From NCBI RefSeq assembly GCF_902713615.1, contig NC_052176.1, positions 10,926,243 through 10,990,242 on the forward strand: a stretch of DNA of 64,000 bases, written 5' to 3'. The notes under the pieces were generated by a model. That model made no database searches. It worked only from the letters and a program-made list of their open reading frames with translations, and was not told where the DNA came from. Positions 26,608 to 26,698 of this stretch are shown here, in pieces. Numbering within the stretch: the stretch's first letter is position 1; every line of letters begins with the position of its first letter. Origin of the DNA: Scyliorhinus canicula. Taxonomy: Eukaryota. The position numbers and the translations under genes were made by a program.

Positions 26608-26698
26608 GGCTCGTTGGTCTAGGGGTATGATTCTCGCTTAGGGACTTTCATTTGCGGTAAAATGCGAGAGATCCCGGGTTCAAATCCCGGACGAGCCC
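26608..26698 (+). tRNA. tRNA-Pro: tRNA-Pro(AGG) with 19-nt intron (26644-26662)
   Basis: Vertebrate Pro-AGG sequence with one variable-loop change; ACTTTCATTTGCGGTAAAA inserted after G37; T6 terminator at 26701. Confidence 0.88.

Follow-up and report, generated by a model that had tools for sequence, protein, structure and literature searches.

The window, by which we mean the whole 64,000 bp stretch of catshark DNA that was analyzed, contains a cluster of tRNA genes, histone genes and repeats, with the histone and tRNA clusters interleaved. Among the tRNA genes is a tRNA-Pro(AGG) that carries an insert in its anticodon loop, referred to here as copy 1:

26608-26698, + strand: tRNA-Pro(AGG) copy 1, recognized by ARAGORN (-i), by the Rfam tRNA model and from the sequence itself
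26644-26662, + strand: 19 nt intron, ACTTTCATTTGCGGTAAAA, between positions 37 and 38 of copy 1

ARAGORN run with -i calls copy 1 as tRNA-Pro(agg) i(37,19), with a complete cloverleaf. A 5' exon of 36 nt and a 3' exon of 36 nt surround the insert, which lies between standard positions 37 and 38, and removal of 26644-26662 in silico yields a 72 nt Pro(AGG). The Rfam tRNA model gives copy 1 a score of 46.8 bits against a gathering score of 29, a match that needed permissive filters on the region and that the default scan of the whole window missed. The third-last base of the intron is A and position 32 is U, and the two are able to pair. The sole visible oddity of copy 1 is an A in the variable loop, at which copy 2 and the remnant described below have G. 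Copy 1 keeps its A and B boxes, a T5 terminator and an intact cloverleaf, and given these features it could still be transcribed. The 64 kb window has no native or intronless Pro gene with which to compare it, and no Pro-like sequence beyond three copies, the other two of which are located as follows:

58363-58574, + strand: inserted unit containing copy 2 (leader, pre-tRNA, trailer and SINE tail), delimited by comparison with the unit that contains copy 1
58374-58462, + strand: pre-tRNA-Pro of copy 2, with an identical 19 nt intron at 58410-58428
46845-46903, + strand: diverged and 5'-truncated remnant, in which 22 intron-like nt (46845-46866) are followed by the Pro 3' exon (46867-46903)

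Copy 2 lacks 2 nt of the T arm, its Rfam tRNA score of 27.4 bits is below the gathering score, and ARAGORN makes no tRNA call on it. The remnant has no 5' exon, being truncated at about G37, and has diverged further than copies 1 and 2, such that the same insert is present in relics of different age. A first-pass annotation of this DNA had described an intron-containing tRNA-Pro(AGG) at 26608-26698 with a 19 nt insert between 37 and 38, the A that can pair with U32, and an identical intron at 58410-58428; all of these are borne out, the last in a copy whose T arm is broken. It had also reported a third, diverged copy at 46855-46903, the limits of which are corrected here to 46845-46903. The match of this remnant to the 3' exon plus the TAAAA that ends the intron-like stretch is clear (E = 0.004), whereas the alignment of the intron portion alone is weak, its score being reached by 44 of 2000 shuffles. 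The copies in the window are thus relics, one intact, one broken and one truncated.

The remnant sits at a block boundary, where it is joined through a GAC microhomology to the trailer of a Leu(AAG)-like gene, and its partner region (61960-62230) has a SINE in its place. The Leu(AAG)-like gene is present in several copies with a common trailer, TTGACTTTTCC:

27205-27269, - strand: Leu(AAG)-like gene copy
46790-46850, + strand: Leu(AAG)-like gene copy, the trailer of which meets the Pro intron-like remnant at GAC
48700-48769, + strand: Leu(AAG)-like gene copy
23685-23761, + strand: Leu(AAG)-like gene copy

Because GACTTT is also G37 together with the start of the intron in tRNA-Pro, a microhomology-mediated junction between the Leu and Pro sequences is possible. 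A 12 nt match to the start of the intron at 755-766 is taken as chance (E = 0.25).

That the insert is an artefact of assembly or sequencing is scarcely credible. The window has the insert twice, in copies that have diverged, and of four sampled words overlapping the intron three are present in DNA runs that come from two samples and two studies, one of these runs being possibly the source of the assembly; nothing was counted in favor of an artefact. Several small runs, which were guessed to be RNA and are perhaps DNA, contain one or two of the four intron-overlapping words, and the runs registered as RNA are poly(A) or oligo-dT libraries. A metagenome scan with the intron plus 3' exon (24 nt) gave no matches.

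Copy 1 is part of a larger inserted unit with the following components:

26599-26812, + strand: inserted unit of 214 nt, comprising leader, tRNA with intron, trailer and SINE tail
26599-26607, + strand: presumed 5' leader of 9 nt, TAGCAGGTC, with homology to the empty sites stopping just upstream
26699-26705, + strand: 3' trailer AGTTTTT, a Pol III terminator run that directly abuts the SINE piece
26706-26812, + strand: 5'-truncated SINE tail, recognized because it aligns with the full SINE at 20608-20964 as well as with other tails

The tRNA with its intron accounts for 91 nt of the unit. The distance from the end of the flank homology to G1 is 9 nt for copy 1 and 11 nt for copy 2, and on the other side the SINE homology begins immediately after AGTTTTT. 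The tail corresponds to the last ~107 nt of a family that is present elsewhere in the window, and it ends at the element's own ATTCTAT-type terminus. These borders fit a complete Pol III primary transcript, with a short leader, an intron and an oligo-U end, joined to a 5'-truncated retroelement tail. None of the other tRNA genes in the window, when compared by eye, has this arrangement of tRNA, terminator and SINE tail, and there are no dispersed copies of the same head and tail in the 64 kb, in which a single insertion event, later duplicated, is seen.

Self-comparison of the window shows that the two units lie in paralogous blocks, and that related blocks lack them:

24420-27816, + strand: paralogous block c1, which carries tRNA-Pro (copy 1)
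56563-59532, + strand: paralogous block c2, which carries tRNA-Pro (copy 2)
50954-48170, - strand: paralogous block c3, without tRNA-Pro
about 35435-33646, - strand: distant partial block og, without tRNA-Pro
49165-49185, - strand: empty site in c3, with contiguous flanks, a junction at about 49175/49174, and neither tRNA-Pro nor tail
33895-33915, - strand: empty site in og, in contiguous alignment with c3 across the site
26225-26582, - strand: separate SINE insertion, in c1 only and absent from c2 and from the empty-site paralogs

Both c3 and og lack the 214 nt unit, and their mutual alignment is unbroken across the site. The separate SINE in c1 ends about 17 nt upstream of the leader, and evidently landed later than the Pro unit. 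A maximum-likelihood tree of the shared left flank, which is unrooted, groups the blocks as ((c1,c2),(c3,og)), with 18 informative sites for c1 plus c2 versus 3 and 1. The og branch is by far the longest, which places the midpoint root on og (by our own arithmetic from the branch lengths). With og as the outgroup under midpoint rooting, one insertion in the ancestor of c1 and c2 is therefore favored over two identical deletions.

The tree bears also on a different explanation, in which the duplicated block had tRNA-Pro as a native gene, the terminator of this gene was hit by a truncated SINE, and the c3/og lineage then lost both in one deletion. As the tree of the four blocks is unrooted, c3 and og could be a clade with one deletion, an arrangement that needs the root to be on the inner branch. 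The lack of a target-site duplication could be read in the same way, there being no convincing one at the borders of the unit, where the flanks are ~10% diverged; CR1-type elements, for their part, often produce short target-site duplications or none. However, such a deletion must start within about 10 nt of the 5' end of the tRNA and stop exactly at the 3' terminus of the SINE, and midpoint rooting, by making og the outgroup, requires two identical deletions. We regard a native gene as improbable. The comparison of the blocks suggests instead that the tRNA-Pro in the window is probably non-native to its site, a retro-copy that was later duplicated together with its block.

The tRNA portions of c1 and c2 differ by 2 substitutions in 89 aligned sites, as compared with 252 in 2869 for the flanks (P = 0.013). 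The Gly gene of block c1 is clearly more diverged from its c3 counterpart, as judged by eye with the differences uncounted. The low divergence of the tRNA part would fit constraint in the past or else gene conversion involving a larger family, and it is no proof of function in these particular copies, c2 being broken and c1 having the variable-loop A.

The route that we propose for the retro-copy begins with a CR1-like LINE reverse transcriptase that starts on a SINE RNA and copies about 107 nt of its 3' end. The enzyme would then switch templates, taking up a nascent and still unspliced Pol III transcript of Pro-AGG at its oligo-U 3' end and copying it as far as the 5' leader, after which the chimera would integrate; subsequent duplication of the block bearing the chimera would give copies 1 and 2. 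The RNA template in such a route would have had a leader, canonical exons with the intron between them, and a terminator run, and an intron-bearing Pro-AGG gene would therefore have existed elsewhere and been transcribed in the germline. The lineage very probably has transcribed intron-bearing Pro genes, the transcription being judged from the structure of the retro-copy. A retro-copy of this kind keeps the complete primary transcript in DNA, with its leader, intron and oligo-U trailer, and suggests that unspliced pre-tRNAs can re-enter the vertebrate germline as copies with both the intron and the internal promoter intact.

A second explanation for the insert is that it is dead weight and never spliced. 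On this view it would have been acquired by a tRNA-Pro pseudogene, or by the tRNA-Pro-derived head of a SINE in the making, the copies in the window would belong to a pseudogene or retro-element lineage, and the working Pro tRNAs would be made from intronless genes elsewhere. The unit is laid out like a SINE, with a tRNA head containing an internal promoter and a LINE-type tail, each of the three copies is either damaged or out of its native place, and decaying tRNA genes abound in the blocks around them; moreover, the proximal pair available to the Pro intron is not the C-G of the known metazoan intron tRNAs. However, there is a T5 run between the tRNA head and the SINE tail, at which Pol III would normally stop before reaching the tail, and this is awkward for a self-propagating SINE; insertion of the chimera is furthermore seen just once in 64 kb. 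The exons of c1 and c2 are also near-identical, differing in one or two bases, with a perfect cloverleaf, and the insert occupies precisely the 37/38 site and offers U32 a base to pair with. We think this explanation unlikely, though it deserves to be taken seriously. The reading that we favor, and hold to be reasonably likely, is that the 19 nt insert is a true intron at the canonical position in a shark tRNA-Pro(AGG) family and that its copies in the window arrived by retro-copying and are not resident genes.

The first-pass annotation had suggested that this lineage may have an additional spliced tRNA family. This is borne out in part, in that the anatomy is as it described and the retro-copy structure implies an intron-bearing source gene with perfect exons and transcription by Pol III, but the insert is found in the window only in non-native copies, and splicing would have to proceed through a U-A proximal pair. 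The annotation had also considered that the insert might be confined to decayed paralogues, which is half true of the window, with its one duplicated retro-copy, of which one daughter is broken, and a truncated remnant.

If the source family is spliced, its intron would probably be removed by the tRNA splicing endonuclease measuring from the mature body to the 37/38 site, with use of a U32-A(-3) proximal pair and a 3 nt bulge at the 3' site. A canonical intron-bearing gene in the window provides a comparison:

32599-32690, - strand: tRNA-Arg(TCT), of a canonical vertebrate intron family, with a 19 nt intron, C32 opposite G(-3), and A38

The human endonuclease recognizes the mature body of its substrate. 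It requires position 32 to pair with intron position -3, as the proximal pair, beside a 3 nt bulge at the 3' site; the loop around the 5' splice site is flexible. Intron tRNAs of human and Drosophila have strictly C-G as this pair, and cleavage is sensitive to how strong the pair is (bioRxiv 10.1101/2022.09.02.506201). In the Pro pre-tRNA the possible pairs are those of U32, U33 and A34 with A(-3), A(-4) and U(-5) of the intron, which leave A(-2), A(-1) and U38 as a 3 nt bulge. The proximal pair would be U32-A(-3), whereas the Arg(TCT) gene, which has one T-stem mismatch and scores 51.6 bits with Rfam, has C32-G(-3). The anticodon-intron helix of the Pro pre-tRNA consists of three A-U pairs, and the arm as drawn has a free energy of -2.8 kcal/mol versus a minimum of -5.8 for an alternative fold; unconstrained folds of the pre-tRNA do not show the drawn helix. 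Splicing of the Pro intron by way of these modeled pairs is plausible, and would depart from the C-G rule of metazoans.

Introns of eukaryotic tRNAs lie between N37 and N38, and the human intron-bearing families are Tyr-GUA, Ile-UAU, Arg-UCU and Leu-CAA (PMC10275265); proline is not among them, in agreement with the first-pass annotation, which had placed it outside the established families. In yeast there is an intron in Pro-UGG. The shark Pro insert resembles introns cut by the splicing endonuclease (TSEN) in lying between N37 and N38, in its 19 nt length, which is that of the Arg-TCT intron in the window, and in leaving the mature domain intact in copy 1; as in TSEN substrates, the pairing of 32 with intron position -3 and the 3 nt bulge at the 3' site can form. 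It differs from the human TSEN families in its proline isotype and in having a U-A proximal pair instead of the strict C-G of human and Drosophila, and it differs from the cited human structure in that the last base of the bulge is U38, whereas the human A at this place makes an A-minor contact. A search of the literature, with GtRNAdb outside its scope, found nothing relevant on intron-bearing tRNA-Pro in sharks or fishes, and the catshark genome paper makes no mention of tRNA.

Retro-copying of small RNAs also has precedents, and the sources summarized in PMC4476161 (Schmitz et al. 2004, Buzdin et al. 2002/2003) include L1-mediated pre-tRNA retropseudogenes, known from human, and template-switch chimeras of small RNAs and LINEs in mammals. 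The shark unit shares with these a layout in which the 3' end of a whole small Pol III transcript is followed directly by the 3' portion of a retroelement, and it occupies a site that the paralogs have empty. It differs from them in that its partner is a CR1-like SINE tail and not L1, in having no poly(A) and no clear target-site duplication, in its shark host, and in that the copied RNA has an intron of a family not known for one. A third parallel is with recent intron gains in yeast tRNAs, such as Ala-UGC in Lachancea and Gly-UCC in Kluyveromyces, for which a reverse-transcribed intermediate has been proposed (Yoshihisa 2014, PMC4090602). There too a lineage-restricted intron occupies the canonical position in an isodecoder that is intron-free in relatives; the shark case differs in being from a vertebrate, and in that the window displays spread, through retro-copying of an already intron-bearing pre-tRNA, and not the original gain. 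Both the Pro intron and the retro-copy are new cases of known phenomena.

A broader reading, which we advance only tentatively and think rather doubtful, is that the catshark lineage converted its proline tRNA genes to an intron-bearing form, spliced by way of U32-A and spread by fusions of reverse-transcribed pre-tRNA with SINE tails. If true, this would provide a natural example of a tRNA intron colonizing a gene family through RNA intermediates, with U32-A as the departure from C-G. The vertebrate intron-bearing tRNA families are a very stable set, to which proline with an intron at the canonical position would add a fifth. Such a case bears on how eukaryotic tRNA genes gain and spread introns, and a proline family would test the requirement of the human and fly endonuclease for a C-G proximal pair. 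The practical value is limited for now.

Among the other features of the window, we note that many of the tRNA genes in the duplicated blocks (22900-63600) are decaying copies, including those at 27685-27757, 29233-29306, 44110-44181 and 59456-59521. Gly-TCC of block c1 and Lys-CTT at 29233 have many substitutions, and the Gly at 59456-59521 has a deletion in the T arm. The 'Cys(aca)' call at 44110-44181 is instead a decayed paralog of the Lys-CTT at 63450-63522, with a shortened anticodon loop. Overall the tRNA cluster gives the impression of a graveyard for genes produced by segmental duplication. SINE-tail-like pieces (…GGGCCGAATGGCCTCCTTCTGCACT…) are present at 29373-29410, 44242-44306 and 27326-27394, where they precede several minus-strand tRNA genes by about 60 nt in the opposite orientation, and they recur as part of the duplicated units.

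The histone genes are in two inverted blocks, at 13858-16861 and 53400-56378, which are 96% identical. Each contains a histone 3' stem-loop (14658-14703, + strand; 55555-55600, - strand), and an H2B protein is encoded at 55636-56019 on the - strand. This protein is matched exactly in NCBI assembly GCA_902713615.2, which is sScyCan1 of the small-spotted catshark (PMC13200729). A tandem satellite of roughly 10 kb occupies 2300-12127 and 13229-13860, and is composed of a 36 nt unit with a 68 nt higher-order period and about 80% identity between units.
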